Assembly: GCA_964036045.1 (NCBI GenBank)
Contig: OZ038378.1
Span: 141,980,001-142,044,000 of the forward strand
Reading direction: 5' to 3'
Length of the DNA: 64,000 nt
Source: Eutreptiella sp. 'Long Island Sound 2002'
Lineage: Eukaryota; Protista; Euglenida
The first letter of the stretch is position 1, and every line of letters begins with the position of its first letter. The notes beneath the pieces are model-generated. The model was given only the letters and a program-made list of their open reading frames with translations. It made no database searches and was not told where the DNA came from. Below are positions 10,631-46,217 of this stretch, one piece after another. The translations under genes were made by a program, and so were the position numbers.

Positions 10631-11350
10631 GAGGTGATGTGAGGTGAGGTGAGGTGAGGTGAGGTGAGGTGAGGTGAGGTGAGGTGATGTGAGGTGATGT
10701 GAGATGAGATGAGGTGCAGTGGAGTTGGAGGGGGGGTGAGGTGAGGTGAGGTGAGGTGAGGTGAGGTGAGGTGAGGTGAGGTGATGTGAGGTGATGTGAG
10801 GTGAGGTGCAGTGGAGGTGAGGTGAGGTGAGGTGAGGTGAGGTGAGGTGAGGTGAGGTGAGGTGAGGTGAGGTGAGGTGAGGTGAGGTGAGGTGAGGTGA
10901 GGTGAGGTGAGGTGAGGTGAGGTGAGGTGATGTGAGGTGATGTGAGGTGATGTGAGGTGAGGTGCAGTGGAGGTGAGGTGAGGTGAGGTGAGGTGATGTG
11001 AGGTGAGGTGCAGTGGAGGTGAGGTGAGGTGAGGTGAGGTGAGGTGAGGTGAGGTGAGGTGAGGTGAGGTGAGGTGAGGTGAGGTGAGGTGAGGTGAGGT
11101 GAGGTGAGGTGAGGTGAGGTGAGGTGAGGTGAGGTGAGGTGAGGTGAGGTGAGGTGAGGTGAGGTGAGGTGAGATGAGGTGAGGTGAGGTGCGGTGAGGT
11201 GAGGTGAGGTGAGGTGAGGTGAGGTGAGATGAGGTGAGGTGAGGTGAGGTGAGGTGAGGTGAGGTGAGGTGAGTTGGAGGTGGAGGTGGAGGTGGAGGTG
11301 ATGTGAGGTGGAGGTGAGGTGAGGTGGAGGTGGAGGTGAGGTGGAGGTGG
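10631..11350. repeat. (GAGGT)n pentanucleotide satellite
   Basis: Direct reading, with GATGT and GCAGT variants. Confidence 0.98.
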
Positions 11351-16885: not shown

Positions 16886-17557
<672 letters not shown>

Positions 17558-24900: not shown

Positions 24901-27900
24901 GCGCAAGCCTTTTTGCTGCAGATGTTTGTAGCAGGTGTTTTCCTGTCACTTTTGCTGCCGCCGGGGCTTTCTTGCAGCCACAGACCGGCAGGGGCCACAT
25001 AGGGGCCACATAGCAAGGCAGTAGGGTGTTTTGCAACCATCGAGCGGCAAGCTTTTTGGTAGCCGCTGTGCAGCACGATGATTTGTAGCCACTGAGTACC
25101 GCGCTTTTTTGCGACAACCAACAGTGGGCCTTGTTGCTGCCACTGAGCAGCAGGACCTTTAGTAGCGGCTGAGCAACAGGTCTGTGTGCTACCGGTAAAC
25201 TGCAGGCTTTTTTGCGACCAAGGACTAGCGAACCGTTTAGCTGCCACCAAGTGGCAGGTCTTGTTGCTGCCACTGAGCGGCATACCTTATAGTGGCCACT
25301 AGCTTTTTGGCAGCCACGCAGCTGCACGGCTCTTTGCCGCCCAAGAACCACAGGCTTTTAGTAGGTTTTTTGGAGCGGCGGGCTTTTTGCTGCCGCAGAG
25401 GAGCAAGCCCTCGTGCTACCACAGAGTGGCAATTTTTTTTTTTTTTTTGCTGCCACAGAGTAGCAGGTTTTGGCAGCCAAAGGGTGGCATGTCCTTTGGC
25501 TACCGCTGAGCGGCAGGGTCTTTTGCATTGAATGGTAAGCTTAGTAGTTGCCACTAGGCAGCGTGCATTTTTGCCGCCACCGAGCAACAGGTTTTAGCTG
25601 CCACTGGGCGGCCTGCCTTTCTGCTGCCACTTAGCAGCAGGGACTTTTGTTGCCATAGAGCGGCAAGCTTTTTAGCAGCCATTGGGCAGCAGTCTGTTTT
25701 TGCTGTCACCTAGCAGTGTGTTTTTTTTTATTTTGCTGCCACCGAGCTGCAGGTTTTTGCAGCCACTGAGCGGCATGCCTTTCTGAAGCGACTGGCCAGC
25801 AGGGTCTTTTGCAGCTATTGAGCGACAAGCTTTTTAGTTGCCGTTGAGCAGCACGCTTTTTAGGTGCCACTGGGGAGCGGATCTTTTTGTGGTCACCTGG
25901 CAGTGTGCTTTTTTGCTGCCACTGAGCAGCAGGTTTTGCAGCCACTAAGCACAAGGTTATGCGGCCACAGAGCGTTGTGTCCTTTTGCTGCAGGTGTGCA
26001 CGAGGCTTTTTTAGCTATCACTAGGTTAGGGCTTTTCTTTAGTTTTTGTTGCAGCAGGGCTTTTTGCTGTAAGTAAGCGTAAGTAAGCGGTGTGCTTTTT
26101 TTGGTGCCGCTGAAAAGCATGCTTTACTGCTGCCGCTGAGCAGCATGCCATGCGGCGGCCACAGCACAGCACACCACAGAGTGGCAAGTTTTTAGCTGCC
26201 AGTAAGCAGCAAACTTATTGGCTGCCGCTCAGCAACAGGTCTTTTTGCTGCCATTGAGCAGCGTGCCTTTTTGCTGCCACTGAGCAGCAAGCTTTTTCGT
26301 TGCCAATGAGTAGCAGGTCTTTTTGCTGCCACTGAGCAGTGTACTTTTTGACAGCAAGCCTTTTTTGCTCCCGATGGGCCGCAAGCTTTTTAGCAGTGGC
26401 GGAGTCGCGTGTTTTTGCTGCCACTCAGCTGCATGCCTTTAGCTACCACCGCGCGGCGTGTCTTTTTGCTGCCGCTGAGCAGCATGCTAAATAGCTGCCA
26501 CTAAGCAGCAGGCTTTTCAGCCGCCACTAAGTGGCAGGCTTTTCGCTGCCACAGGCCATCAGGGATTTTTGTTGCGGCTGCGCAGCACCCTTTTTAGCAG
26601 CCGCAAAGTCGCAAGTTTTTGCTACCACTGAGCAGCATGCCTCTCTGCTACCGATGAGCAGCGTGCTTTCTAGCTGCCACTGCGCTGCAAGCTTTTTAGC
26701 TGCCACTGAGCGGCATGCCTTTTTGCTGCCACTGAGTAACAGATCCTTTGTTGCTGCTGTGCAACGTGCCTTATCACTGCCACTGGGTGGCAGCAGGCCC
26801 TGCTGCAGTTGCGCCGCAGCATGCCTTTCTACTGCCACTGGGCAGCAGGGGCTTTTGCTGCCACTGAGCGGCAATTCGTTTGGATACCAGTGAGCGGCAA
26901 GCGTTTTAGCTGCCATAGAGCAGCAAGCTCGTTAGCTGCCACTAAGTGGCAAGCTTTTCTGCTGCCATTGAGCAGCATACCTTTTTGCTGCAGCTCCGCA
27001 GCATGCTTTTTTGCTACCACTGAGTAGCGAGGTTTTTGACTGCTGCTAAGCGGCACTTTTTTTAGCAGTCACTGAGTAGCGGGCTTCCTTGCTGCTACTT
27101 TTTTTTTTGGCCGACACTGAGCACCAGGCTTTTTTGCTTTCACCTAGCGGTGTGCAGTTTGCTGCCACTGAGCAGGTTGGGGGTTGCCAGTGAGCACCAG
27201 CTTAAATGGCCACAGGGCAACATGTCCTTTTGCAGCCGGTGTGCAGCAGGCCTCATGATGGCGCTAAGCTGCAGGCTTTTTGGTGCCACTAGCCAGCTAG
27301 TTTTTTGCAGTCACTAAGCAGCATGCTTTTTCGCTGCCACTGAGCAGCACGGCTTTCTGCTGCCACAGAGGAGCATGCCTTTCTGCTGCCATTGAGTAGT
27401 AGGGGCCTTTGTTGGAATTGAGTGGCAAATTGTTTAGCGACCGTTGAGCAGCAAACTTTTTAGCAGCCACTGGGCAGCAGGTCTTTTGTTGCCACTGCGC
27501 ATCAAGCTTGTTAGCGGCCACTGAGTGGCAGGGTTTTTTGCAGCCACTGGGCAACATGCCTTTGTGCAGCCGCAGAGCAACAGGCGCTTTAGCCGTCTCT
27601 AAGTAGCTAGTTTTTGCTGCCACTGAGCGGCATGCCTTTTTGTTGCCGCTGAGCTGTATGCCTTTTTGCAGCTGCTGAGCAGCGCGTTTTTTAGCTGCCA
27701 TCGAGCAGCAAGCTTTTTTGCAGCCACTGAGCGGCAGGCCTCTTTGCTGCCGCTGAGCACGGTGCCTACTTGCTGCCCCTGAGCAGCAGGTTTTTGTAGA
27801 CACTGAGCAGCGGGTTTTTTGTAAGCACTGAGCAGTGGGCTTTTTTCCTGCTCTTCGGCAGCACCCCTTTGTGCTGCTGCTGAGCAACAGAGGCTTGGAT

Positions 27901-28330: not shown

Positions 28331-29045
<715 letters not shown>

Positions 29046-29600
29046 GTGCATCCGTTACTACCTACTGTGGACTGAGGTCTCTACAATCCTCGGGAGGGCG
29101 GTGGGCAGAGAGGGAGTACAGTTTCCGTCTCTGACCTATGGGATAACATTCTTCACATGTATTCGTCTATTAGTTCACACGGTGCTGGGCTGGGCTGGGC
29201 TGAGGGTGAACTGACGTGATGCCGTCGTGTGACGAGCTGGTTCTGCAAGAGGCAGAGCCTGGCTTTCCGTTTCCTGTAGGTTCCGTGGACGATGTTGTGC
29301 GCCTCTCCCTGCAGAAAAGACTGGCTTTGGACATGCTTTGTCTTGTTTGATGACCAGCTGACGAGGAATTGACATCCGGACTTGGCATTGTGCTCGTCTG
29401 CTTGTTGACAACCGTGTGTGTGTGTGTGATGCTGGGCTGGGCTTTGCTGGGCTGAGCTGGGCTGGCCTGGGACGTGCAGAGCCAATTCTGACCCTACGAA
29501 CAGTGCCAGTGTTGTCCACAAGGCAGTACTGCATGTTGCGTTCGTCATGGCTGTCGCCGGAGCGAGCTGCCGCCGGGCATCCTATTTCCTGCTCCCCCTA

Positions 29601-29664
29601 CAGAAAGGCCCTTAGTGTGTATCATGCACTACTTTTGTGGCCTGCCATGACGCGCGCCTGACGA
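29601..29664 (+). ncRNA. Candidate permuted (type II order) hammerhead-like motif
   Basis: GAAA-ggccct-TA, then stem I gtgtgtatcatg/catgacgcgcgc (11 of 12 pairs including GU), then CTGACGA. Stem II is not canonical. Confidence 0.45.
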
Positions 29665-29710
29665 GAATCTTTGCACTCAGCGCCTTCATAGTGCCTGTTT
29701 GTCACGTTCA

Positions 29711-29744
<34 letters not shown>

Positions 29745-29849
29745 TTGTTTTTGCTGGCCTGACGAGCTGAAGCTGTCCAGTGCAGGGGCCTGTTTGCCTC
29801 CAGGGTTGTTGTGTTGGATCCATTGCATAGTGTGTGTGTGCCTGGTGGT

Positions 29850-31620
29850 GAACACGATGGGTGATGTCCGTGTGTCCTGTGGCCACCTGGCTGTAGTACC
29901 CCTTCACGCACACGACACGCACGGTCGTGAGCTTAGACCGAGAGACCCCCTCCCAATCAATGGGCTCCATGCCCGGTCCATTGCATGCAAGAGAATTGCG
30001 GCAATTGCCAAACAGATTGGAGGGAACACTCCTGATCTTCTGACTGCACTTCCCTGTAGTCTATTTCCTGAGACAGGAAATGACCTTAAGAGGGCGCAAA
30101 GCATGGCTAGGGCTGTCACGGGACAATTGTATGTTCGTATTGTTGATAAAGGGGCGGGACTCATGTGGGGATTTTGTGCTGCATGGGTTTGGGACACAGT
30201 CCGCAAATTTCTTATTAAAGAAGGCTATGAACAAACTGCACTTACCCCGGGTGACATTCTGAATACTCTGCATGGGGTGGTGGCGCATAATGGGTGGCGG
30301 GAGAACAAGAACACAAAGATGTGCCGGCTGTACCTTATGGTAAAGCCAAAAGTCTCTTGAGGCCAGAATGGCTATGGAGGCCAATAGCTGCGAATCCCTA
30401 GCCCCTCATTGATAGCCAAACCCTTACTGTTGCTGCAAGAGCCTTCACCTGCTTCCTCCGATTTCTCATTGCTGAAATTCCCATGTCCTTCATGATTCTA
30501 AAAGTTACAGACGCTGCACCCTGGTTTACCTGGACAGCGTCACTAGGCCTCAATGTGCTGTGTGAACTAGACTGCAAAGAGCAATTTAACAAAGTGCGAC
30601 CCGAATGGATCACAGATCACATGAATAATGCGAGTTCACGGCTGGGGGCGCGCAAGCGCTGGCGTGGTACCACCCTCATGTGGTGTGTGCACTATGATCA
30701 CAAAAAACTTGACAGAGCGGGGCAGGCTAGTGGGCAGGGTTTCTGCTGCATAGCGCATGACACCTTATTGGATCAGGTCAGCTTCGACCTCATGCGAAAT
30801 AATTACTGTGCCGCGGCAGGGTCTGCCCGGGTACTCCGTGGCTGCATCCCGATGGGGGGCCCGTTTAGTTCGCAAAGTGCTGACCTTCACTGCGTCTGGG
30901 GGCGTACAGAACAGAAACATGTTTCGTGACGTGGGCCAGCTCATTATTTCAGAATCCGGATACGCCTACTGGGTCAGGGAATGGACCATTGCCCTGCGTC
31001 AATTTAGAGACAACATTCTCATGGCAACAGATGCATCTGAAAAGGACCGGGGCAGGGTGGTAGAGCTGGTCAAGGGAGTGCTCCGGCGGGCATGGGGATT
31101 GCCAGTCGTATGCCCATGCATTACAGCTGAAAACCCGCAGTGCCAAGGAGCATGATGTGGCCAGGTATGCAAAGCAATGGGAGTAGTTTTTGTTAAGGAT
31201 GAACAGGAGAATGGGATGGCGTTCGCTGAGCCATGTGCACTCACTGAGTACTGGACCCTCCGCCTAGCAGAACCCCTTCCGACCCCAGCATGTGCGTATC
31301 CAGGGAACCTCGATGCAATTTTCACGGGAGTGCTCAAAAATGGACTACCATTCACCGAAAGCTGGGCACGGCAAATTTTAAGCGCAGCACCATGGCTCCA
31401 AGTTGCCAGACTGTCAGGGTACTCTCGGGCAGAAGCAATGAGAGCAATGCACAAAGGCCTACATCGATCATATGCTACATCCCCCCACAACATTCAGGCC
31501 ACAATCAAGGCTGTTTACAATCTATCGTACAGGCTACCATGCACAAGAGCCCGGGCAGCACAACACGTTCTCCACTGGATTCAAAAACACGCATACTGGG
31601 ATGGGGTAAAACACAGCTAG
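29850..31620 (+). pseudogene. Frameshifted PLE-type reverse transcriptase
   Basis: ORF pieces 29713-30360, 30483-30929, 30757-31155 and 31177-31620 are colinear with the RT-containing part of the intact ORF2. Confidence 0.85.
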
Positions 31621-32082
31621 CGTCTAACAAAATCGGTGGGACTGAGTGATATCACTGGTGTCTGGGAGGATCATTGCGGGTGCCTGCGAGTGCTCACAGA
31701 ATCAATATGAAGGCTGTGTGTGTGTATCACCCCGGTGACGGGGCGACCTGATTGCATTTCTTCCTCATCCTTGAATGTAACTACCCCCGAATGTACCAAA
31801 AATGCTCAATGGTTTGGTGACGTCCTCTTGTCCTGGGCCGAGGAGGGGAGCAGGCAGAAATGATGGCTTAGCCCAGAGCCTGTGCAGCAGCAACGGATCG
31901 AGTTGCCTGGTGGTACCCCTGCCGTAGTGCTAGATGGAGGGACAGATGAGGGGCTGGGCTGGGCTGGGTGCTGCCAGGCGGCTTGCACATGGCTGTATCC
32001 TACAGGCCTGTGTACCGGCGGCGCTGGCAGTGGTGCTGAACATGGGCGGGTCCCAACCCTCATCTCCATATGTCTTGTACTA

Positions 32083-32143
32083 CAGAAAGGCGCCTAGCGC
32101 AGCCAGACAATGGCCATGCTCTTGTGCTGACTGTGCCTGACGA
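32083..32143 (+). ncRNA. Candidate permuted hammerhead-like motif
   Basis: GAAA, palindromic AGGCGCCT, H17=A, stem I gcgcagccag/ctgactgtgc (9 of 10 pairs), then CTGACGA. Confidence 0.5.
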
Positions 32144-32209
32144 GAATCTGTGCAAACAGGCCTTCTTGACTGCTGCCCGCGTCTTGGCTGATGCCCGTTT
32201 GTTGCGTAT

Positions 32210-32302
<93 letters not shown>

Positions 32303-32305
<3 letters not shown>

Positions 32306-32620
32306 CGGCGGGTTACACCCGTCTCCAGCTAAGTACCTCCAGAGTAGACATGTAAGTAGCGCTGCGGTTTTCAACAGATCATACAATCATTGGCTAGACA
32401 GGGCCGGACAGTGGGCAGGGTCTGTAGTGATCAGCGCACAATGCACTGTGAGAACAAACTCCTCCTCACCGTCACTCCTGTCTCAGAAAGGACCTTGCCT
32501 ACCTTTTTGTTAATGGCCTGATGAAATTGTCTCGGTGACCAGTGCTCTGCCTTCGCTTGCTTTCGTCTTCACTGACGTCGTGCCCCGCGTTTGGTCCCCA
32601 CTGGTTTTCCCGCACGAAGT
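32303..32620 (+). repeat. 5' direct repeat (pseudo-LTR)
   Basis: gagcggcgggttacacccg...cccgcacgaagt, near-identical to 38312-38628. Confidence 0.95.
32484..32524 (+). ncRNA. Candidate permuted hammerhead-like motif in the 5' repeat (second copy at 38492-38532)
   Basis: GAAA-ggacct-T, a 3-bp stem I (gcc/ggc), then CTGATGA. Weaker than the other two. Confidence 0.35.
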
Positions 32621-32747
32621 GTGTGGTCTGCTGTTGGCACGCCCCCCAGTGTCCGTTCGGCAGTTTGCGTTTTGTTGAAGACATCTCCACGCTTGGCGCT
32701 GCTTTGTCTACTCTACTAATCTTGTTTCTGTATCCTCCGACCCTCTC

Positions 32748-34154
32748 ATGGCCGACCCCCCTATTATCTGCCGCCGATGTCACAAAGGCGGGCACCATGC
32801 CTCTGCCTGTCCAGAAGCTAGCACTGGCAATCGCTTGGAGCGAGGAGGCCGCGGCCCTCCACCATCAAAGTGCTGGACCTGTGAGCTGATCGATGGCGCT
32901 GATGCAAACCACTGGGGAGATGAGTGTCCAGTAGCCGCGCAGCGACTGAAGGATCGCCAATGCACCCTATGTGGTTCGCGAGACCACTGGAAAAAAGGAT
33001 GCCCCAGATACGAAGCAGACAAACATAAGGCCCGCAACCCCACAACCACCTACTGGCCCACCGGTCCCAAGCGATCAGCAATCTCATGGTGCCTGCGCTG
33101 CGGAGTCAAAGGGGAACACCCCACAATGGATTGCACAGCCGCCGGTCCCCCAATCATCCTGCCTGACGCCTCCGATGCCGACGATCTGCAAGATGTCTGC
33201 CTCTGGTGCTCCATTAAAGGCCACTCCCATCAATCCTGCATGCGCCGAGCTCCAATCCAGGCAAAAGAAAATGCTACAGCTATTGCGGGTCTGACAGATC
33301 GCGTGGATGCCCTACAACAATCCGTCACAGACTGCAATGCCTTGTCAGGAAAGGTGTCCACATTGGAGGGACAGATGTCCAGTTTAATGACCTGGAAGTC
33401 AGCTACAGAGGGCCGCTTGACAGTTTTGGAGTCCTGGCAGTCCTCTGCCAACAATAAATTCGTCGCCCGGTCCAGCTTTGATGCATTCGTGGAAGAAAAA
33501 TTCACGCCGACGCAACGACAGGCCGCTACAGCAGTAGCAACATCGACCTTCGATGAATTCGTCAACACGCGCTTCCTCCCAACTGAGCAACAGGCCTCGG
33601 CATCTCTTCCAGCGGAATCGTTCAACGACTATGTCATGAGAATGGAACATGCGGGGTTCAAACCAGCTGACGAGGACACACCAATGTCAACGGCTCGGCT
33701 CACGGGGGCCCCACGCATAGCTTCAGAGTCACAGGAGATCGGTAGCCCAGGGCAAACGGCAAAGGAAAGAGCGGCAAAGCGTGCCCACACTCCGTCTGGC
33801 GCCGGCGGTGCAAGCTCCTCGTCTTCAGTGTTCGCCACGCCGGCCTCCCGTATGCAGGCAGGGGCAGCTGCGTTTGGTGGAGTCTCACCTCCGAGTGCGC
33901 CGTGGCTAGCGCTGAAACCTACAGAAAGCTCTCAGTGGTCAGAAGACGCCCTTGACCTGCTATTCAGCGAATGGACAGCCCATATGGACTCCAGATTGCA
34001 GCAGTGGGCGTCCAAGCATCTCCAGGGTGAAATGAAGAGCACGGTGGAAACCCTGGCCCGTGATACGTGGTCACCAGAGAAGAAGCGTGGCATCTCTGCA
34101 GTGCTGACAACATCTCGAGTTCCAGTGCGCCTGTTCACCAATTTAAATCGGTAG
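32748..34154 (+). CDS. ORF1, Gag-like nucleic-acid-binding protein (468 aa)
   Basis: Zinc knuckles CRRCHKGGHHASAC, CWTC..HWGDEC, CTLCGSRDHWKKGC, CLRCGVKGEHPTMDC and CLWCSIKGHSHQSC, followed by the heptad-like segment IAGLTDRVDALQQSV...LEGQMSSL. Confidence 0.85.
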   Translation: MADPPIICRRCHKGGHHASACPEASTGNRLERGGRGPPPSKCWTCELIDGADANHWGDECPVAAQRLKDRQCTLCGSRDHWKKGCPRYEADKHKARNPTTTYWPTGPKRSAISWCLRCGVKGEHPTMDCTAAGPPIILPDASDADDLQDVCLWCSIKGHSHQSCMRRAPIQAKENATAIAGLTDRVDALQQSVTDCNALSGKVSTLEGQMSSLMTWKSATEGRLTVLESWQSSANNKFVARSSFDAFVEEKFTPTQRQAATAVATSTFDEFVNTRFLPTEQQASASLPAESFNDYVMRMEHAGFKPADEDTPMSTARLTGAPRIASESQEIGSPGQTAKERAAKRAHTPSGAGGASSSSSVFATPASRMQAGAAAFGGVSPPSAPWLALKPTESSQWSEDALDLLFSEWTAHMDSRLQQWASKHLQGEMKSTVETLARDTWSPEKKRGISAVLTTSRVPVRLFTNLNR

Positions 34155-34222
34155 GGGAGGGGGGAGATCATATTCTGTTTCGGGCGTCCTCACCCCCGCA
34201 GACATGCAGTGATGGCCCCCCC
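34142..34222 (+). promoter_or_regulatory. Candidate -1 programmed ribosomal frameshift signal
   Basis: T TTA AAT (34142-48) is in the ORF1 frame, one codon before the TAG. A 5-nt spacer precedes a GC-rich stem (34154-61 with 34187-95), and a second pairing is possible (34182-85 with 34215-18). ORF2 is in the -1 frame. Confidence 0.7.
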
Positions 34223-37200
34223 GTAGACAGTCTGGTCAGCACCATGCTCTCCCTCCAGTGGATACGGCAAAAAATGGGTCTCGCCTCTTACATAGTCCAG
34301 CAAACATCAGAGTTCGTCTCCCATCTGGACACCCACACATACTATCCGATGGACATGACACACACCGGTGATCCGATCCACAACACACGTAACCGTATCA
34401 ACGCCCTATCCCATTGTGACTCCCAAAGCAGTGAGCGTGCCTTATGTGACAAACGACACACCGACAACGTAGCCGGACAGTGGGCACATGCTTCGCCTCC
34501 GCCCCCCCTGCAGGCACAACCATTCAGAGATATACAGTGTTCCAAGGTGCCTGGGTGGGTTTTCCGCAGAGTATGCCACACCCTGTCCGCGGTCAGTGGA
34601 TGGTCCACACCACACGGGTGGCGTACAGCATGTCACATCCAATGGGACAACCCAGCGACACGGCAGATACACTCCTCCTCCTCCCCCCACGTCCTGACAT
34701 CTTGGGACGAATGCAACTCCGTACTCCCTCTGCCCTCCCCCCTCCCTGACCCCCTGCAACACCTGTGGATTTGGGCCCCAGCATCTGAGGTCCCAGCGGT
34801 GCAATACCACTTCCCCCAAATGTCCACTGTGGGTTGGTTCAGCACTTCACAGCCTATTCACCTCATGACCTCGTCCAGTGCCCTGGATGCATGTGACAGC
34901 ATCCAAATACACCGTCTGCACATGTTGTTGTCGCATGAAGGATCGAGCCTCTTGGTCCACCAACCCCCACCCCAGAGCACCAATGTCCTCAGAGCTCTAT
35001 GTATCCAGATGTCACGAGCCCTGTCGGATAAAAATCTTGGTAGATGGGCAGCACTCCACCAACTAAGGATATCCTACCTTCCGTACAACACGCATGCAGC
35101 GCTCAGGATGGCTCGCAGGTTGAGCCACGTCCACGTCTGGTACACTCATGTAACACCCCCCCAGTACGCAGTATACTTAGTATTCCATATATATCTCCAC
35201 CTTGTGTATGTGGGCGTCACAAGCAAAGCACTGATCGTTCGCCTCCGGAAACACCAAACAGACGCATCGAGTTTCCAAGATTGCTCTACACTCCACCGGT
35301 TAATGTTGCAAACGGACAGTGCCCACTGGGGGATCATCCCCCTGCAATTCATGAGTGATGAGTGGTACGCCAGCGTCAGGGAGCGACACTGGTGGTTTGT
35401 GTTCAAAAAATGGGCCTGCAACGATGTTGCGCCAGGCATTAGCACCGAGGGGCAAGGGTCGGGACCACGGGGATGGCTGAACCAACGAGTCCTGCAAGTC
35501 CTGCACAGCATGAAAGTGGCCCGACAGATAAAGGATTTCCCGCGACTTAAATTTCTGCAGCAGGACCTTCACAGTCTGGCCTCGCAGATGAGTGTACCAC
35601 TGTACTCCGTAGGCAGTATCATCGTCCCGAATCTGCAGCCATCTCAGAAAAGTGCTATTCACAGAGTCACCCGAAAAATGATTGCTTCTGTTGCCAGCGC
35701 CGCATGGGAAAAACAGGCCCTGTCTAAGGCCATACGAGTCGTCCGCAGTAGCCCGGTAAACGTCCGCCGCGTTTTTGAGCAACACGCTCGGCGATTCGAT
35801 AAGTTAGGCGACCAGCCCCCATGCAAGTGTCTCACATCACCAAAATTCCCGGGGGTCTCCACAGTCATCGATGGGCACATAGCGTACACACCACTGTGGG
35901 TACCTACCTCAGACACCTATGCCCGACCCAACGACCCCCTACCCCTCAGAGGCTCCTCCGTCCACTCCCAACTCCTCTTTGACCTGAAAAAGATGGCGGA
36001 TCAAATCGGTGCAAGTCTTCCACCCCTCGAACTGATGCTCCCAGACTCCCTGTGGCCAGAGACGGGCCACAAGCTTACACAAGTCACGAAATTTGCCAAG
36101 TCGGTCTGTCAGTCCCATTATGTCCGCATCGTCGACAAGGGGGTGGGAGTCCTATGGGCGTTCTGCCGCCACTGGGTATGGGGCATCATCCAACAGTTCC
36201 TGAAGAGCGAAGGCTACACCCCGTCCCCTAAAACTTTGCCCCAGGCCATGGCCTTCGTCTCTGCAGAGCTCGACGCCAGAGGCTGGGACCGCAACACGGC
36301 CGGTCAACTTCCCCTCCTCTATCTCCTGGGCAAATTCAAATCACTGGCTAAGGGTAAATGGCTCTGGCGCGGCATTACCTCCCTCCCCCAACCCCTGCTA
36401 CCCAAAAAATCGCTGCGCATTGCCGCACGCGCCAACACAGCCTTCCTCCGACTCCTGTGCCAAGAAGTCCCCTGCTGTTTTCTAGCTCAGAGCATCTCAG
36501 AAGTAAGCCAATGGTTCCACTGGTTAGACACCATAAACGCCCGGTTCATCAGTGAGGTGGATTGCAAGGACCAATTCAATAATATATGCCCCACTGACAT
36601 AGAATCCCACCTGACGGCAGCCAGCAAGTGGCTCGCCAAACGCCGCAAGTGGCGCATGACAGATATTGAGTGGTCCATTCACAAAGACTCCAAAATGCTC
36701 GACAGAGCGGGACGTGCAAAAGCAACGAAATTCTGGTACATCACCCACGCCCAAATGTCAGACACAATCACGTTTGAAATGCACTGCAATAATTTCATCA
36801 GAGCAGTGGGAGGGTTATGGTGCCGCCACGGTTGCATTCCAATGGGCGGTTCTTTTTCAGCCCAGGCAGCCGATCTGCACAGCCTATGGCAGGTATATTC
36901 AAATCGCCACCACCTGCGCCGCCTGGGCTCCCGCACTGTTTCCCAGGCAGGGTTCCCCTACTGGGAGTCCCCGCAGGGGATAACCGCCCTATGTCAATTT
37001 AGAGACAACATCCTGATTGCCACCACCAACCCAGACACCACCTCCCACCCCATCATCTCTACAGTGTGTAACCTGCTTGGCGAGGCATGGAACCTGGATG
37101 TGCTCTGTGAGTGTATGTCAGGGCCAGGGGACCCCTGCAAACATCACTGCCACTCAGCGTCCCTCGGCTTTGACATGATTCGGGGGGAAACGGGTAAAGG

Positions 37201-37744
37201 ACTGGCGTACCTACACCCCAGCGCGCTCTCATCAACTTGGAGTCTGAAGAGTGCACCCCCCCTCCTATCCCCTGCAAGCGCCTATCCTGCTTACCTGCCG
37301 GGTATCATGACGGGCGCTTTGAGCAATGCACGCCCTTGGGCCACGACATGGGCGGGGGGGCTGCTGTCCCTCTCTGCTTGGTTACAGATAGCGCTTCTCA
37401 GCGGGTATGCATTGCCACAGGTCACCAGGGCGGCACACTCGGCGGTCACGCGGGGCCTGTCCACCAGCCCCAACGACCATACAGCCACAACCCGCTACCT
37501 GTACACGGTTTGCCACCTCCTCCCCATGCCACACTGCTGCCACCTCACCTTGTGCGCCGCGTGGCTGCGGCGTCATGCACACTGGGCAGGGGACAGCTAC
37601 AGCAGTTGGCACCTGGACCCATCCCTGTCACCAGACGGAACCACGGGCTTCTGGTGCGGAGACTGGGAAATCCTCCACCTCCACGCCGCCAAAGTTAAAC
37701 CCAGCAACCATGACTGCCCCCCTTGGGAGACCATGTGTGTGTAA
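34142..37744 (+). CDS. ORF2: unknown N-terminal region, GIY-YIG endonuclease and PLE-type reverse transcriptase (~1200 aa)
   Basis: GIY-YIG-like YAVY...VYVGVT...RLRKH...RE...ND at ~35165-35425. RT motifs are IVDKG, EVDCKDQF, GCIPMGGSFS and QFRDNILI. The frame is open from 34067. Confidence 0.9.
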   Translation, partial: FKSVGEGGDHILFRASSPPQTCSDGPPVDSLVSTMLSLQWIRQKMGLASYIVQQTSEFVSHLDTHTYYPMDMTHTGDPIHNTRNRINALSHCDSQSSERALCDKRHTDNVAGQWAHASPPPPLQAQPFRDIQCSKVPGWVFRRVCHTLSAVSGWSTPHGWRTACHIQWDNPATRQIHSSSSPHVLTSWDECNSVLPLPSPLPDPLQHLWIWAPASEVPAVQYHFPQMSTVGWFSTSQPIHLMTSSSALDACDSIQIHRLHMLLSHEGSSLLVHQPPPQSTNVLRALCIQMSRALSDKNLGRWAALHQLRISYLPYNTHAALRMARRLSHVHVWYTHVTPPQYAVYLVFHIYLHLVYVGVTSKALIVRLRKHQTDASSFQDCSTLHRLMLQTDSAHWGIIPLQFMSDEWYASVRERHWWFVFKKWACNDVAPGISTEGQGSGPRGWLNQRVLQVLHSMKVARQIKDFPRLKFLQQDLHSLASQMSVPLYSVGSIIVPNLQPSQKSAIHRVTRKMIASVASAAWEKQALSKAIRVVRSSPVNVRRVFEQHARRFDKLGDQPPCKCLTSPKFPGVSTVIDGHIAYTPLWVPTSDTYARPNDPLPLRGSSVHSQLLFDLKKMADQIGASLPPLELMLPDSLWPETGHKLTQVTKFAKSVCQSHYVRIVDKGVGVLWAFCRHWVWGIIQQFLKSEGYTPSPKTLPQAMAFVSAELDARGWDRNTAGQLPLLYLLGKFKSLAKGKWLWRGITSLPQPLLPKKSLRIAARANTAFLRLLCQEVPCCFLAQSISEVSQWFHWLDTINARFISEVDCKDQFNNICPTDIESHLTAASKWLAKRRKWRMTDIEWSIHKDSKMLDRAGRAKATKFWYITHAQMSDTITFEMHCNNFIRAVGGLWCRHGCIPMGGSFSAQAADLHSLWQVYSNRHHLRRLGSRTVSQAGFPYWESPQGITALCQFRDNILIATTNPDTTSHPIISTVCNLLGEAWNLDVLCECMSGPGDPCKHHCHSASLGFDMIRGETGKGLAYLHPSALSSTWSLKSAPPLLSPASAYPAYLPGIMTGALSNARPWATTWAGGLLSLSAWLQIALLSGYALPQVTRAAHSAVTRGLSTSPNDHTATTRYLYTVCHLLPMPHCCHLTLCAAWLRRHAHWAGDSYSSWHLDPSLSPDGTTGFWCGDWEILHLHAAKVKPSNHDCPPWETMCV

Positions 37745-37784
37745 CCCATGAATGTGCATGTTTGTGCCACAGACATGTAAGAGG

Positions 37785-37856
37785 CCTGGAGTGGACCAGT
37801 GGTCAGCGACATAGACTCGCCAGCCTATAGCGGAGGTTCGAATCCTCCTATCGTCG
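37785..37856 (+). ncRNA. tRNA-like / Pol III-promoter-like segment in the element's 3' region (not a functional tRNA)
   Basis: A box TGGACCAGTGG (37792-802), B box GGTTCGAATCC (37835-45), and a perfect T-arm stem GGAGG/CCTCC. The acceptor stem does not pair. Confidence 0.55.
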
Positions 37857-38311
37857 TAAACGCACCACCACCCCCTACAACAGCACACGCGGCCAGCGGG
37901 TCCACGGACACCGGCATCGGGCGGTGCGCCTCGCTTTTTCAGGCAACCCCCCCAAACCCCCGGCCCCCTACACGCGCCGCAAAAAACGCACCACCGCCCC
38001 CTCCGGCAGCGCGCGCCGCTTGCGCGTCTTGAACCCCGGCAGCGTGGCGAGGGGGGTGCATTCGCTGCAGCCGGGCACCTGCAGCGAGTCTTCTCTTCGG
38101 CAGTGCAGCCACGCGCACAGCGGGAATCGAACCGGCGCCTTCACGGCACGAGCCCGGCGATTCTACCCCTGGGGTAGCACACACCACAGCCACAAAAAGC
38201 ACCATGCACACATACCAACACAGCGACACCCCACGATGTGCGCCACAAAGCGACAGCGAAATGCGTCGGATTCACTGACCATGACGGGCCCCTTGGAGTC
38301 TGTGTGTGTGT

Positions 38312-38628
38312 GAGCGGCGGGTTACACCCGTCTCAGCTAAGTACCTCCAGAGTAGACATGTAAGTAGCGCTGCGGTTTTCAACAGATCATACAATCATTG
38401 GCTAGACAGGGCCGGACAGTGGGCAGGGTCTGTAGTGATCAGCGCACAATGCACTGTGAGAACAAAATCCTCCTCACCGTCACTCCTGTCTCAGAAAGGA
38501 CCTTGCCTACCTTTTTGTTAATGGCCTGATGAAATTGTCTCGGTGACCAGTGCTCTGCCTTCGCTTGCTTTCGTCTTCACTGACGTCGTGCCCCGCGTTT
38601 GGTCCCCACTGGTTTTCCCGCACGAAGT
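38312..38628 (+). repeat. 3' direct repeat (pseudo-LTR)
   Basis: Near-identical to 32303-32620 and flanked by (TG)n. Confidence 0.95.
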
Positions 38629-40595
38629 GTGTGTGTGCGTGCGCGCGCGTGCGTGCGAGCATGCGTGCGTGCGTGCGTGCGTGCGTGCGGGCTTGGAGTG
38701 TGTGTTTATGCACGGGTGCATACATGCCTGTGCGTGTTGCACATTTCTGCGTGTGTGTGCCTCTGTGCCGCTGTGCCTGTGTCTGTTTCTGGAGTATTGT
38801 TATCAATTTGGCTGTTCAGGCCAGCGGTCACTGCCCCTTTCCTCCCCATGGGGTAGGAGCCCTTAACATGCCCGGGCTGGGATTTCTTCAAAGGGATGGT
38901 CGCAGTCCCCAGTGTTGTCCCTTGCGCAGAGTTGTGGTGAACTGGCGATGCCTATGGTGACCTGCGGCATAAAATGGCCATAAAAGACAGGGCTATCCTT
39001 GATGAACAAGGACAAAGAGACAACTACGAAGACAGCACACAACACATGGCCGAAGCACTCAAGGGGACAAGCAGGCCATTAGTCATACCCCCGCCCATTT
39101 CATCCACAATCTTATCACCAATGGGGCTGGGGTTATAACTGCGGCTGATGTATATACTGGCGTGAGCACAGCGGCCACTGAGTATGCAATTGATGTGCAA
39201 ATGAGCATGTTCAGAGAGGCTGCCGGAGCCAAGTGGGCACCGGTACAGGGGTGTAGGCGTCCGTTTAGGCGATTTGAGGGTTGCGGGTGGACTCGGAATC
39301 GGATTTTGAGACACTCAGCCTGAGATATGACCCTTCTTGTTTTTGCGGCTGTGCAGCCAAAATTGCGCAGATTTTGGGCCATTTTGGGCCTTTTCCGGGT
39401 GTTTCTCGGACATATTGTGGAGTTAGGCCACCAAGGGGCTCTTTGACACGGAGCAGCCGCACACATTACTTTGGGGGAGATTTCCGCGGTCAATTTGTTT
39501 TTGGTACTAAAGACGAGGCAAATGATGACCCCCCCCCCTCCCCCGGCGACGTGCTCACCGCCCATCGGGCTTCGGTTCCTGCGGCCCTGGGGCTGTGCGG
39601 GTGGGTGTACAATGCACTGGGGGAGCCCCTCCCCTCCCCAAAAAGGGCTCTGACAGGGCCCCCAACTTGGAACGCCCTCCCCGAGGCCCCTGAGGTCACC
39701 TGGACCCAACAAAATCGAGGAACTTCAAAATGGCTTTTCTGGAATCAGCATGCCAAGCCCCCCCCCCCCCCTCCTCCACCTCCTCCGTGTGTGACATGGG
39801 CGCATGCCCCACGCCATTTCTCTTCGGCTCCTGCAGTTCCAGCCCCCCGGGCTCACACGCACTATACGACGTGGGACCTCTTTCTTGGGGCACTCCTCCG
39901 TGTCTCACGGGGGATTATCCCAAGCCTGGGAGAGATTCCATCTGCAGGTGTGCCTGCAAGGCGGGGCGGAGTGTGTGGGCGCAGGCGAACGGTGATTGAC
40001 GGACGGCGGTTGGTGGTCCACGGGCAACGCAATGGGCGGTTTTGGGGGCGGCGAGATGCACAAAGGATTACAAGTGGACAATGAGGGAGCGTTGGCGCGC
40101 CGGGCAATCTTTCAACGGTCACCGTCCCACCCCCAACATTTGGGGGGCATGTGTCTGTATGGGATTTTCTGACCTCGCTTCGCGCAATGGGATTTGGGCA
40201 ACTATTTTAGTGCCCAAGAGAGCAAGCAATGATTCCAAAAGAGGCCAATGTTGTCATTAAACTCCTTCACCACACTTCTTCCATGCATGAATGAGTTGTG
40301 CTTTTGTATTTGTGGAAAGGGCACCCCAAGCTCGGCATGAAGGGGGTAACGCATTGGGATAGAAGGCCGGAGCATTGATTTGGATGCCGGGCGCGCCGGG
40401 CAAACGTTCCCTCAATGGTACACCTGCAATCACATTTGCAAGTCAGGGCTGCAGAGGGCTTATGGGTAGGGACGGGGAGGGGGGCTTTCGGACGGGTTTC
40501 TTTCATTTGTCGGAAACTTTGCACTTCAGTTTGCTGCGGACTTCGCTGCACAAGTTTGGATGAGGTGTGTTCCACATGTTGCACCAGTTGTCGGC

Positions 40596-41930: not shown

Positions 41931-42444
41931 TAGAGAAGGTCCCATGACCAGGAAGCAGAGAGCGTCCCCGTGAACGTTCGTTTCTGTTGGCGTTACAAGA
42001 ATCCCCCCCCCCCCCCCTGAAGGACAGCCCTGCCGGAGAGCGCCCGGGTCAGGCCTTTTCTTAGTGCCTCTCACACCGGACCCCGGAGGTGGGTGCCTGC
42101 CTTTTTCAAAATTTTGGGTGCCTCCTTCAGATGGGACCCCCCCGCCGGGGGGGTGGGGGTGGGCCAAGAGTGGGTTGGTGGCTTTGGAGGGAAGGGCTAT
42201 ATTCCTGGCGCCAAAGGCGCCGGAAAGTTTTTTCCCTTATATTTCCCTTTGTGTTGGTCAGTCGGTGAGTGGGTGGGTGCCTCTTGGGTTTCATCCCCCC
42301 CCCCCCTCCCGGGGGTGGGGGTGGGTCAAGTGCTGTGCGTGCCTCCCTGCCGATTCTGCCCCCCCCCCCCCCCCTTGGGGTTGCTCTGAAAAGCCCTGGC
42401 CCGGGTGTTCACCTCCACCTCCACCCCTCGCCTCCTCTGTGCAG

Positions 42445-44925
42445 TACGGCAAGCGCCAGTCCATCACGCTGCCGTCGGCCCTGACAAAGCTGCAGCGCCG
42501 GGTCCTCGTCGCCCTCCACAGCCTGAGCCACGCCGCCCACGACTCGGCCGACGGGCTGCTGGCGCTGGAGGAGGTGCTGCGGGGCCCCCCCGGCGACGTC
42601 TGCGCCGGGGCTGGGGAGGCCCGCTCGACGTTCTTACTGAAGCTCCACCGCCACCTCTCCCAAGCCGACCTCACCTGCTCCCCCGCGCCGGAGGACACCC
42701 GCGCGACCCGCCTCGTCGTCCAACGCGCCTCCGACGCCGAGCCGGAGTGCGGCACCTTCGACGCCGGGCCCGGCACTGCGGAGGCCGGCAACGCCGAGCC
42801 CGGCAACGGCAGCAGCGGCCGCAGCAGCAGCAGCAGCAGCAGCGGCGGCGGCGGCGGCGGCTGCGAAGGCCCCGATGACGGGGCCCGCGGTCTTGGCCGG
42901 CGCAGCACCGGCTCCGAGCAGTCGAGCACCGGCATCGACCGGCGGCTGCAGCTGCTCTGTGCCATCGCGTACGCCTCCGAGACCGACCACCCGTGGGTCC
43001 CGGCGTTCGCCACGGCGCTGTCCGAGCACGAGCGCGGCCACGCGCCCTTCAAGTCGTCCGCGGAGCAGGAGCTGCTGCTGCGGGGGCTGGGGGTCACGCT
43101 CGGGCCCGGCGCGGGGCCGGCGCGGGACACGTGGCGGCTGCTGCTGGTCACGATCTGGGGGGGCGAGGGGCCCTGGGCCCTGCTGCTGCTCCGGGCCGCG
43201 CTGCTCCGGACGCAGATCGAGTTCGAGCTCGTCTTCGACCTCGTCGACGGCTGCCTCCCGGTCGCGCGCGCGCAGGTGCGCGCGATCGCGGCGCTGCTCC
43301 TCGGCCACCTCCGGTGCGACGGGTACGCGCGGGAGCAGCGCCTCGCCGACCTGGAGCGGAGCATGGACGCCCTGCGCGCCGGCGAGGGCAACGTGTGGAT
43401 GCTGCCGGGCCTGGGCGCACCGCAGCCCCGAGCCCCGGCGGCGCACGGCGGCTGCGACTCCTGGGGGCCCATGGAGAGTCCCGCGCCGGCCCCAGTGCAC
43501 GCGACCGGCCGCCGCGACTCTTGGAGGCCCATGGAGAGTCCCGCGGCGGGTCCGGGGGGTGCGGGTCTGCTGGTGTGCTCCCCCGCGCCCACGCCGCGGC
43601 CCTCAGGGGCCCTGGAGAAGGGGGAGAGGCCGCAGTGGACCTGGGCCACCCTCGAGTGCGCGCCGCCGAAGGGGAGCGCGCGCGCGCGTCGCCCCAGTCG
43701 TCTGCTGCGCGGATCGCTGGAGCGCGCCCGCCCCGCGGACGTGGGGCTGGAGCTGGGCCATGTGGCGCTGGGCGACGGGCTCCTGGACCTGACCCGGTGC
43801 TGGGGCACCACCGCCGACGGCGCGCGCGTCTCGCCCCCGGACGCCAACGAGACGCACGAGCCCGCGGCCCGCGGAGTGCCACTCGGAGGGCACGCCTCGT
43901 GGCTGCAGTGGCAGGACAGCGCCCCGGGGCCCGCCCCGCCCGAGCGCCCGTCCGCCAACGCGGCGACCCCGAGCCCGACCCCTGCCGAGCCCGAGCCCAT
44001 CACCTCGTCCCTCGTGAAGGAGGTGCTCGTGATGGACTATGGACCGGATCTGGAGCCGGCCGACGACCCGGGCGCGTGCGGCGCGTGCCTCTGGAACCGC
44101 GGCCTCGCCGCGCTGGCCGCCGGGCGCGTCGCGCGCGCGGGCGCGGCCTTCGCGAGCGGGCGCGCGCCGGCGCCGGCGGCGCTGGTGCGCGGCGTCGACC
44201 CCGGTGGCGCGGCGTGGGCGCCGTTCTGGTGCCTGTACTACGCGTGGGCCCTGGGGCACGCGGCGGTCCCGTCGCAGCTCCAGGCGATGGTCCGCGCCAA
44301 CCGCCGGCACGCCGCCCGGGACCTCGCGGCGTCCGTCCGCCTGCTCCCGCTCCCCGGCGGGGCCGCCATCGCGGCCACCCTCAGCGTAATCGCGGAGCGT
44401 GGGCCGATCCTACCGGCCTCAGTCCCCCCGAAACCGCGGCCCGAGGCCGCACCGCCGGTGGTGTCCTTGTGCCCCGACTGCACGACGCACGCCGAGCTGC
44501 CGGGCTTTGAGGCCGCGGCCTTTGGTGGCGCCGCATCTTTTGGTGCCGCCGCGGCTTTTGGTGCCGCCGCGGACGGTGCGCCGGAGAAGCCGCTCCCGGC
44601 GGCCGCGGAGGTGCCGTCTTCGCCGCTGCCGGCCATCGTGAACGGGCTGCTGGGCTTCCCGGACGCGCTGTTCGTGGGGCCCGTGTACGACGCGGCGCAG
44701 CGCCAGACGGGGTCGCTCTTCCGGCCGTTCCACAGCGTGGAGGACGCGCTGCGGCGCGCGCGCAGCGGGCAGACGGTGGTGCTGCTGCCGGGGACGTACG
44801 CGGCCCTGAGGGTGCACGACGTGCAGGCGACCGCGGGGGCCCCCGTGCGCATTCAGGGCCTGGGCAGCGTGGTGATCGCGATGCCTCACAAGGTTCGCAG
44901 GGGGCAGCGCCCGCCCCTCATCAAG
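42445..44925 (+). CDS. Host gene exon (827 codons): predicted cytoplasmic loop, ending in the start of a beta-helix/DUF1565-like domain
   Basis: tgtgcag acceptor and AAG|GTGCCG donor, phase 0-0, with GC-rich coding-like sequence. Contains GSLFRPFHSVEDALRRARSGQTVVLLPGTY. Confidence 0.8.
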
Positions 44926-46217
44926 GTGCCGCCATGCCCCGCACCCACGCCCCACACCCGCACGCTTGGCACAAACCTGAGTGTGTGCCATATCAGGCGG
45001 TTCTCCGGTTTTGCCTCAGGGAGACCAATGACTAGACGTGAACGCAGTGGCCCTCCAGAGTGGTGGTCTCAACAACACTAGAGGTACGGCGCTAGGCCAA
45101 GCTGCAGAGACGTCCCCTGCATCCTGTGGCCCTGTTTTGCCGAACTAGGACTCACCATAATGGAGAGGCACTGGTAAAAAGTGGCCGTGAATGGGTAGAG
45201 GACAACATGGCCCCAGATCTGGTGCCTCCTTCCCTTGCATTATCCAGTGCTGTAACGGGCTTTGACTTGTTATGTGCGCCAAGAATGGTCGTGAGGTTTG
45301 CGCCATGATTGGCCTTTAGATAAACACTTGTGCCAAGCATGGAATTTGGATGGACGTTTTTGTTCTGAATAGCCCTGGAATTGACACATCTCCCCTTGGG
45401 ATTGACATTTCTACGATGCATAGGCTTTAGATTGAACTTTCAGCCATGACTGGGCTTGGGGTCGACGTGCACAGCTTGAAGCCACACGTGTGCTCCATGT
45501 GCCATGAACGGGGCTTGATATTTACGCACTGCAAGGGGTAGACATTTGTATTTGGATTCACAGGTGTCCCATGCAGAGGGTATAGAAATGCAGTTGTGCG
45601 GTGAATGGGCGTAGGATTGCCCAGGATGTGCTTTTGGTGGACAAGTAGGCTTTGGGTGGGAATGGATAGGTGCTGTGAAGCGGTTTTGGATTGGTACTTG
45701 TTCCTTGAATGTGGTTGGATAGACCTTGGCGCCCCAAATGGGATTTGGTGTAACCCGGTTCCCTGGAGGAACATGAGATTGACCATGATGCCCTGCACGG
45801 GTGTTGTCTTGACGGCTTGAGTGCACAAGCATGCATTGGGAAGTCTGAGGGCTTTGTATTGCCTTATGCGCTTTGATGGCGCTGATAAGATGTTTCAATG
45901 GATTGGAGACAAACATTCATCTGCATGAGTGGGTGTGGAATCGGCATTTAGTGCCCGTGTTCAATTGGCTGGGCAGCAGATCTATGGTCGGGCGTTTCGT
46001 TGCCAAATGGCGGTTTGCTTTGGTTTCTTTGGCCACACAGCCGAGCCCTGACCAGATACGTGACAAAGGAAGGGCAAAGGATGCCACCGGAAGATGGGTA
46101 ATCTCCGGGAGGGACCAGTGACCGCATCTGGCCAAAGCGGTTTTTAACAGAGCAAAAAAAAAGCGCCCATGCCCCACACCCATGCCCCACACTCATTCCC
46201 CAAACCCACCCCCTCAG

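Follow-up and report, generated by a model that had tools for sequence, protein, structure and literature searches.

The closest described relatives of the element reported here are the Penelope-like elements (PLEs) with an N-terminal endonuclease (EN), for which Craig et al. (2021; PMC8557442) defined the groups Naiad and Chlamys and described a bias for insertion into microsatellites as well as pseudo-LTRs (LTR, long terminal repeat). Chlamys elements prefer (CA)n or (C)n as insertion sites, form tandems, undergo 5' truncation and mostly do without a hammerhead ribozyme (PMC8557442). One of them, Chlamys-2_cBra of Chara braunii, has a canonical 3' hammerhead ribozyme together with an upstream open reading frame (ORF) that encodes a gag-like zf-CCHC domain (PMC8557442), and a later report extends the group to the brown alga Ectocarpus (PMC12477816). 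In the available text of PMC8557442, the reverse transcriptases (RTs) of PLEs are described as the sister group of the telomerase reverse transcriptases (TERTs). Here, we analyze a stretch of 64,000 nucleotides (nt) from the euglenid Eutreptiella sp. 'Long Island Sound 2002' (assembly GCA_964036045.1, contig OZ038378.1, positions 141,980,001 to 142,044,000, forward strand), referred to as the window, which contains a PLE with two genes: ORF1, whose product carries five CCHC-type zinc knuckles, and ORF2, which encodes EN and RT. ORF1 is a genuine part of this element and is under strong purifying selection. We tentatively propose that a sub-lineage of at least six Chlamys-type families in one host may have acquired a five-knuckle, coiled-coil ORF1 that resembles those of long interspersed nuclear elements (LINEs), and that recoding at the stop codon of ORF1 may provide these families with their EN-RT protein, by -1 frameshifting in case of the window element and by a stop/start overlap elsewhere.

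The association of ORF1 with the element is seen in its relatives. Within the family of the window element, ORF1 lies directly upstream of ORF2 in the window itself and at the loci L003, L004, L007 and L010. The same order is found in the family of L001, L005 and L008, in which ORF1 is about 49-54% identical, in the L006/L009 family (45-46% identity), and in the L002 family (33%). The L012 family is represented by a 5'-truncated copy in which the 3' half of ORF1 remains (40-51% identity, depending on the ORF1 query), and in the L011 family ORF1 is reduced to a weak C-terminal remnant. An earlier note on this DNA, made from the letters alone, had suggested to ask whether ORF1 always travels with ORF2; ORF1 indeed precedes ORF2 in six diverged families, in one of them as a remnant, and selection has acted on it. 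When the window element was compared with a copy from a subfamily of 85% identity, the ratio of nonsynonymous to synonymous substitution rates (dN/dS) was 0.05-0.12 for ORF1 and 0.05-0.17 for ORF2 (0.09-0.17 in its N-terminal extension, 0.05 in the EN), whereas the same DNA read in control frames gave values of 1.8-1.9.

The N-terminal part of the ORF1 protein (ORF1p) contains five knuckles of the form CX2CX4-9HX4C at amino acids (aa) 8-21, 42-60, 72-85, 115-129 and 151-164. The full-length relatives retain all five Cys/His sets, apart from single replacements in some individual copies, and Pfam gave weak matches to these knuckles that stayed below the cut-off (E 0.012-0.96). The five knuckles that had been read from the sequence are confirmed. 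In the AlphaFold2 model of ORF1p, which is of low confidence (pLDDT 52.7), one 74-residue helix spans aa 161-234, and in its best heptad register strong hydrophobic residues occupy 8 of the 12 a/d positions, a value that was equalled in 62 of 2000 shuffles. The helix therefore probably is a coiled coil, with moderate support. For the coiled coil of the earlier note, a long helix and a heptad pattern were found; the proposed modelling returned a poor structure without any structural match. The helix is followed at aa 243-312 by three consecutive units of about 24 residues, each predicted to be helical and each opened by the motif (S/T)F(D/N)x(F/Y)V (aa 243, 267 and 291), which is kept across the ORF1 families and for which we found no known counterpart. 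A disordered Ser/Ala/Pro-rich linker (aa 303-394) then leads to a conserved helical C-terminal domain (aa 399-455). The fold search with the low-confidence ORF1 model gave zero structural matches, capsid-like folds included. Neither an RRM nor an esterase domain was detected by Pfam, by this fold search or by a profile search against PDB sequences, and the latter gave nothing significant at all. Homologue searches with the single sequence and with a profile recovered relatives of ORF1 only in the ENA assembly ERZ25074135 and in one JGI metagenome contig.

From this composition, ORF1p would most likely be a multimerising nucleic-acid-binding chaperone for the element RNA, comparable to a LINE ORF1p, rather than a capsid-forming Gag. 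ORF1 proteins of LINEs carry CCHC knuckles and/or a multimerising coiled coil and are encoded upstream of an EN-RT ORF2, in some cases with stop/start overlaps, and LINEs are mobilised through target-primed reverse transcription with 5' truncation. ORF1p appears to resemble LINE-type ORF1 proteins more than retroviral Gag, whereas the ORF2 proteins differ: the nuclease of LINEs is of the apurinic/apyrimidinic (APE) or restriction-enzyme-like (REL) type instead of GIY-YIG, and their RT is LINE-like, unlike the TERT-like RT found here. LINE ORF1 proteins are characterized in the available text of PMC3905857 as multi-domain non-Gag proteins. What weighs against a chaperone role is that it is read from composition only, and that the model is poor and without a structural match.

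ORF2 begins with a conserved N-terminal extension, up to about aa 360, for which a PDB sequence search with the extension alone gave nothing significant. The GIY-YIG nuclease that follows was recognized by PF01541 at aa 367-442, with an E-value of 0.0054 for the whole ORF2, which is sub-threshold, and of 5.4e-4 for the excised segment; the same profile matches 9 of 12 ORF2 relatives, at best with an E-value of 1.9e-5. In the YIG part, Y, G and T show no or hardly any variation, and the same is true of positions R/K/H, H, E, W and N; the expected catalytic residues R, H, E and N are among them. The nuclease core has no conserved Cys: the window element as well as most relatives have neither a Cys between the GIY-like and the YIG-like motif nor an upstream CxxC. 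Further C-terminal, an alignment of nine ORF2 proteins from the same host (36-97% identical) contains a CxC motif, PPCKC, with both Cys invariant, and the sequence RIVDKG, of which RIVDK is invariant and the next residue is G, S or C. Among 41 relatives, this region reads RIVDKx in 37 (RIVDKG in 29) and RVVDKG in 4. Of the RT motifs, which together span aa 830-983 and lie C-terminal to the GIY-YIG domain, motif A is EVDCKDQFN in the window, with invariant Asp and QFN, and motif B is PMGGSFSAQ, with invariant PxGG. The motif A Asp is separated from motif B by 92 residues, with extra helices in the AlphaFold2 model, and this stretch may be an IFD-like insertion. Motif C, FRDN, is located at the turn of a predicted beta-hairpin and is present in all eight aligned sequences that cover the site. 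Compared with the usual YxDD, FRDN occurs in 41 of 48 relatives that cover this position, and DD in none of the 48. A thumb and a Cys/His-rich C-terminus complete the protein.

The AlphaFold2 model of ORF2 covers aa 334-1225; its pLDDT is 59.8 on average and 65-86 in the RT core. With this model, the top five Foldseek matches were all TERT (E 1.1e-4 to 2.2e-4), and there were no others below 0.001; AbiA, group II intron RTs, defence-associated RTs (DRTs) and retrons ranked next, and no LINE or retroviral RT was among the 50 matches listed. Profiles of ORF2 and of the EN region gave nothing significant against PDB sequences. Pfam and NCBIfam returned for both ORFs only the sub-threshold matches to GIY-YIG and zinc knuckles, and no protease, RNase H, integrase, tyrosine recombinase or capsid was detected in either ORF by Pfam. 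Rfam gave no hammerhead match at the gathering threshold across the window, nor at E-values up to 1 over 29500-39500, and no other RNA family was found in the window, where only microsatellite artefacts matched.

We are confident that the element is a Chlamys-type PLE with the EN before the RT, an assignment made by published motif and domain descriptions and by fold, because its GIY-YIG nuclease without fingers, CxC, DK(G) and possibly lengthened region between motifs A and B correspond to the published diagnosis of Chlamys. On this point, the prediction of a GIY-YIG domain N-terminal to a PLE-type RT was borne out, with motifs and TERT as the closest solved folds of a low-confidence model, and the Naiad/Chlamys placement could be narrowed down to Chlamys. 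There are points that count against the assignment: motif C is DN rather than the canonical DD, at the sequence level the RT matches neither a Pfam RVT family nor a PDB chain, and the ORF2 model is of low confidence, with TM-scores of 0.2-0.27.

Among the described systems, the Chlamys elements known from Chlamydomonas and further green algae (for instance Chlamys-3_cRei and the non-autonomous MRC1; PMC8557442) are similar in having a GIY-YIG domain without CCHH finger or CX2-5CxxC linker, CxC, DK(G), putatively an IFD-like insertion, and about 300 aa of N-terminal extension ahead of the EN, and they likewise target (CA)n, form pseudo-LTRs and tandems, are 5'-truncated and have no hammerhead. 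They differ in that they have a single ORF (PMC8557442), whereas the window element has the conserved ORF1 of 468 aa. In this respect, Chlamys-2_cBra is closer, as it also combines an N-terminal EN with an upstream zf-CCHC ORF and pseudo-LTRs, and it is distributed genome-wide; unlike the window element, it has a 3' hammerhead, and as its number of knuckles, coiled coil and frame relation are not stated, the two are compared by description only (PMC8557442). The invertebrate Naiad elements share the EN before the RT, CxC, microsatellite targeting and the lack of a canonical hammerhead, but they have CCHH and CX2-5CxxC fingers in or before the EN, DKA instead of DKG, and a preference for (TA)n (PMC8557442). 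The rotifer Athena/Terminon elements also have extra coiled-coil ORFs; in contrast to the window element, they are telomere-associated and without endonuclease, and the available text of PMC8557442 does not report a CCHC knuckle for their ORF1. An ORF1 that is separable by a frameshift with a pseudoknot is mentioned in the Fig. 1 legend of that paper, which we take to mean the EN-minus Athena type.

As for the expression of ORF2, the sequence permits the safe statement that its translation appears to be coupled to the end of ORF1. The two frames overlap by 88 nt, with ORF2 in the -1 frame relative to ORF1; this relation is found in five of six families, and the ORF2 frame never opens later than the ORF1 stop codon. 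For the window family, we see about an even chance that ribosomes would shift by -1 at the heptamer U_UUA_AAU, 3 nt before the ORF1 stop, and thereby generate an ORF1-ORF2 fusion. Programmed -1 frameshift signals combine an X_XXY_YYZ heptamer of the upstream frame with a spacer of 5-9 nt and a stable structure behind it, all conserved in relatives. The heptamer, T_TTA_AAT in the DNA, is present together with the spacer in all five copies of at least 96% identity (the window and two copies each at L003 and L010). Because dN/dS in the ORF2 frame is 3.7 upstream of 34142, this frame is not coding upstream of the heptamer; from the ORF1 stop to the first Met the value is 0.34 over 29 codons, which looks coding, if weakly so, and a short protein block upstream of the first Met is common to four families. 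The first ATG of the ORF2 frame in the window family is at codon 60, without any ATG within 87 nt of the ORF1 stop, and in one otherwise open copy of 1238 codons the first-Met position is Ile.

Several observations weigh against frameshifting. The canonical heptamer is limited to the youngest subfamily, and the subfamilies of 91% and 85% identity as well as the sister families have only NNA_AAY. The G-run that follows the heptamer after 6-10 nt is able to form a stem with two C-runs, at a minimum free energy of -30.8 kcal/mol and a z-score of only -0.63 versus shuffles; this downstream stem is no stabler than shuffled sequences, and RNAalifold gave no covariation support. In two sister families, an ORF2-frame ATG overlaps the ORF1 stop as ATGA (L011 3501-3504, L012 3471-3474), and L001 and L008 have an in-frame ATG 12 nt past the stop, while L005 of the same family shows a different frame relation. 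The +1 relation of L005 had been considered as ancestral for its family, but this was dropped, as L008 shows the in-frame arrangement.

The same features favor another mechanism, termination-reinitiation at the ORF1 stop, by which ORF2 of the window element would be made as a separate protein without any Gag-Pol-like fusion. The ATGA overlap of L011 and L012 is the classic arrangement for this mechanism, the ATG shortly after the stop in a third family (L001, L008) fits as well, and so do the absence of a canonical heptamer from two subfamilies and the lack of statistical support for the stem. Termination-reinitiation has been reported for some LINE elements, such as human L1 for its ORF2 and silkworm SART1. 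For the window family it is the main alternative, yet somewhat less likely than frameshifting, since reinitiation would find no ORF2-frame ATG within those 87 nt, and since the perfectly framed heptamer of the five young copies would, by a rough estimate, occur by chance anywhere in the 29-codon overlap with a probability of about 0.06.

A short intron across the ORF1 stop, which would join ORF1 to ORF2 in part of the transcripts, is improbable. It could be derived from the GT at the ORF1 stop (GTAGGG/GTAAGG) that is found in the three subfamilies of the window family, which together with a common downstream AG would define an intron of 80-89 nt and restore the ORF2 frame. However, a comparable donor/acceptor pair is not shared with other families, the ORF2 frame of every family runs through the junction without interruption, something that an intron would not call for, and the putative intron contains the block that is protein-conserved in four families and has the dN/dS of 0.34. 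Frameshifting at the heptamer is retained here as the candidate mechanism for the window family, with the stop/start overlaps as the candidate for some of its sisters.

The direct repeats that flank the two ORFs are pseudo-LTRs that arose by partial head-to-tail tandem insertion, and they are not true LTRs, because at L003 (a JGI metagenome contig) and at L010 two copies of the same family are arranged head to tail and share one single repeat. In the window, the repeats have lengths of 323 and 322 nt, with a single indel and a single substitution between them; they are 6008 nt apart from start to start, and the outer end of each adjoins a TG-type microsatellite. The body of the unit starts at 32626, which is common to the window, L003 and L004, and the junction at which the 3' end is directly followed by the body start recurs in the tandem copies at L003 and L010 and at L004. 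The unit has an internal (TG)5, and this is the point where the upstream partial copy of the window begins. Its 3' end, ...GAAGTGTGTG, is constant in the full-length copies of the window, L004 and L010, at L003, in the truncated copies of L002 and L006, and in a solo fragment at L001. The truncated window-family copies start at positions equivalent to window positions 34864 (L002) and 35624 (L006), and the truncation points are arbitrary. All 5' and 3' junctions that were examined (window, L001, L002, L004, L006) sit in (TG)n, i.e. in (CA)n on the opposite strand. Hence, 32303-38633 is very probably one full-length unit of a Chlamys-type PLE, in front of which the terminal 323 nt of the unit are repeated as a partial tandem copy, and the whole lies within a (TG)n/(CA)n microsatellite (Table 1).

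The earlier note had correctly recognized the two nearly identical repeats (taken as about 318 bp) and the 468-aa ORF1 overlapping an ORF2 of about 1200 aa, for which we find 1225 codons, but the retrovirus-like gag-pol layout that it saw in them was overstated: the repeats are tandem-derived, capsid, protease, RNase H and integrase were not detected by Pfam or, in case of ORF1, by the fold search with a low-confidence model, and the ORF1-ORF2 fusion is putative. An LTR/DIRS-type retrotransposon or endogenous retrovirus-like element with true LTRs and gag-pol, as might be suggested by the terminal direct repeats and by an ORF1 that has knuckles and a -1 overlap with ORF2, has virtually no likelihood left, as the repeat is the duplicated 3' end of a unit whose copies are 5'-truncated at arbitrary points, protease, RNase H, integrase and tyrosine recombinase have no Pfam match, the nuclease is GIY-YIG, and the RT fold is nearest to TERT. 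Equally negligible is the idea that ORF1 has nothing to do with the element, as an unrelated gene or a piece of some other retroelement that happens to be located between repeat and PLE ORF; only the rarity of an ORF1 among described EN-positive PLEs can be cited for it. Such a juxtaposition is excluded because ORF1 precedes ORF2 across families (directly so, at 33-50% identity, in four further families, and as a remnant in a sixth) and because its dN/dS is low versus control frames, and in the tandem copies ORF1 is inside the repeated unit.

Table 1. Features of the element and its immediate surroundings, in window positions.
Feature	Position	Strand	Remark
Neighbouring degraded 5'-truncated PLE copy of a different family	29824..31731	+	tblastn
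Upstream half of the target microsatellite, (TG)46	32212..32302	.	TRF row 32212-32303
Upstream pseudo-LTR, 323 nt	32303..32625	+	5'-truncated tandem copy of the terminal 323 nt of the unit
Leader, pseudo-LTR to ORF1 start	32626..32747	+	
ORF1, 468 aa	32748..34154	+	ATG start
Five ORF1 knuckles	32769..33239		
Three ~24-residue units of ORF1	33474..33683		
ORF2 open frame, 1225 codons	34067..37744	+	probably translated from ~34148 onward
Candidate -1 frameshift heptamer T_TTA_AAT	34142..34148	+	X_XXY_YYZ form in the ORF1 frame; ends 3 nt before the ORF1 stop
G-run, then two C-runs	34155..34222	+	possible stimulatory stem/pseudoknot, speculative; 6-10 nt past the heptamer
GIY-YIG nuclease	35165..35425		ORF2 about aa 367-453
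CxC motif PPCKC	35816..35830		ORF2 aa 584-588
RIVDKG	36125..36142		ORF2 aa 687-692
RT motif A	36554..36580		
RT motif B	36839..36865		
RT motif C	36995..37015		ORF2 aa 977-983
Unique part of the 3' untranslated region	37745..38311	+	terminates in the short internal (TG)5
Downstream pseudo-LTR, 322 nt	38312..38633	+	true 3' end of the unit, last letters ...GAAGTGTGTG
Downstream half of the target microsatellite, (TG)/(TGCG)n	38634..38700	.	

The window element is intact and probably young, as judged from its sequence: ORF1 and ORF2 are free of internal stops and frame changes, and 5'-truncated copies of its family are found at 95-97% identity. With these and the near-identical repeats, the suggestion of recent activity is upheld. 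Among the other copies, the first one at L010 has an ORF2 that is open over 1238 codons, ORF1 can be aligned over its full length in both L010 copies, and the second ORF2 leaves the locus; the first copy of L003 has one frame change in ORF2, and L004 has an intact ORF1 and three frame changes in ORF2. The truncated window-family copies at L002 and L006 have one frame change each. In the other families, ORF2 of L009 is open (1203 codons) with an ORF1 that aligns as a single stretch, L008 has one frame change in ORF1 and an intact ORF2, L001 and L005 have one frame change each in ORF2, and the own-family copy of L006 has three in ORF2. Clusters at 90% identity comprise 104 (window-family ORF2), 65, 58, 35 (ORF1) and 33 member ORFs and include further ORF2s of 1151-1237 aa. 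One cluster member is an MMETSP transcript of a marine protist, which indicates that a related family is transcribed and points to a marine microbial eukaryote. All relatives come from the ENA assembly ERZ25074135, with contigs of up to several Mb and 27-39x coverage, and from a few JGI metagenome contigs; scans of further JGI metagenome contigs found none. A search of a representative library gave 1570 clusters, of which all 150 listed are short fragments.

By analogy with Penelope and Chlamys-3_cRei (PMC8557442), the movement of the element can be imagined as follows. Transcription would start in the upstream pseudo-LTR. ORF1p would bind the element RNA as a multimerising chaperone, and ORF2 would be translated by coupling to the end of ORF1, for which the -1 frameshift at U_UUA_AAU is the best candidate. 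The GIY-YIG nuclease would then nick a microsatellite, and the RT would copy the RNA at the nick, i.e. by target-primed reverse transcription. A frequent early stop of the RT would result in 5' truncation, whereas an RT that runs into a second template would generate tandems and pseudo-LTRs.

PLE copies of different families were also found head to tail with (TG)n between them, namely in the window, where the copy at 29824-31731 (+) precedes the element, and at L002 (3-9214), L004 (6458-15396) and L006 (7001-15458). The 5'-truncated window-family copies of L002 and L006 are located directly downstream of other families. It seems that microsatellite targeting builds mixed PLE arrays, and possibly such arrays grow due to the TG run at the end of each unit, which extends the target. 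The fragment at 29824-31731 comprises the CxC/DKG motifs and all that follows up to the C-terminus of ORF2, with two frame changes, and is nearest to the P0005 family (42-54% aa identity). The solo fragment at L001 2220-2617 is 90% identical to the window pseudo-LTR and is situated within (TG)n, with an element of another family downstream of it; it represents either a copy with extreme 5' truncation or a 3' module that families have in common.

The remainder of the window is rich in satellites and microsatellites and has no recognizable host gene. About 6 kb of degenerate tandem repeats at 21555-27811 consist of a 26-nt unit with a short palindrome (GCTGCCAC..GAGCAGC) and higher-order periods of 52, 78 and 129 nt, and other large arrays are located at 81-2089 (138-nt C/A-rich satellite), 10631-11349 ((GAGGT)141), 17161-17556 ((GT)198) and 28357-29014 ((TGTG)164). 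The strong strand skews of the window are due to these large simple and satellite arrays. At 42001-45081, a region of about 75% G+C contains an open frame of 1005 codons together with several long ORFs that overlap one another and occur on both strands, which have no Pfam match and probably are composition artefacts; 20 long ORFs elsewhere in the window gave no significant Pfam match either, and neither tRNA nor rRNA genes were found in the window. At other loci, the precomputed annotation lists possible host genes that adjoin PLE copies, an AMP deaminase-like (PF19326) and a kinase-PPPase-like one (PF03618), at L012 696-2677 and L008 221-664.

How much of this is new has to be judged against what has been published. 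A first gene with knuckles and a coiled coil is uncommon in a Chlamys-type PLE, yet it is reported for the group: the earlier note did not know of a multi-knuckle Gag-like ORF1 in an EN-positive PLE, but Craig et al. (2021; PMC8557442) describe a knuckle-bearing upstream ORF in Chara. The idea of a new lineage holds in part. The clade, the (CA)n target and the knuckle ORF have been published, whereas the five-knuckle, coiled-coil ORF1 with its coupling at the stop codon looks new; in the PLE literature, we found no description of such an ORF1 or of its presence across six families, nor of a -1 overlap with a canonical heptamer, of varied junctions in sister families, or of a DN motif C. The classification of PLEs is thus unchanged, as clade, target preference and knuckle-bearing upstream ORF are already known. 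For the annotation of transposable elements, it matters that neither ORF is recognized above threshold by Pfam or NCBIfam.

Of the major classes of retrotransposons, PLEs have been studied least, and a single ORF is what their descriptions usually give. If the tentative proposal of a two-gene sub-lineage is true, PLEs would have converged on the two-ORF strategy that is used by LINEs and retroviruses, and DN instead of DD in motif C would be a further trait of this lineage. A well-preserved two-ORF Chlamys lineage, with its clear target preference, its tandems and several sister families that vary in the way ORF1 is joined to ORF2, would provide useful comparative material on how a retroelement gains an RNA-binding first protein, and on how the ratio of this protein to the polymerase is set.

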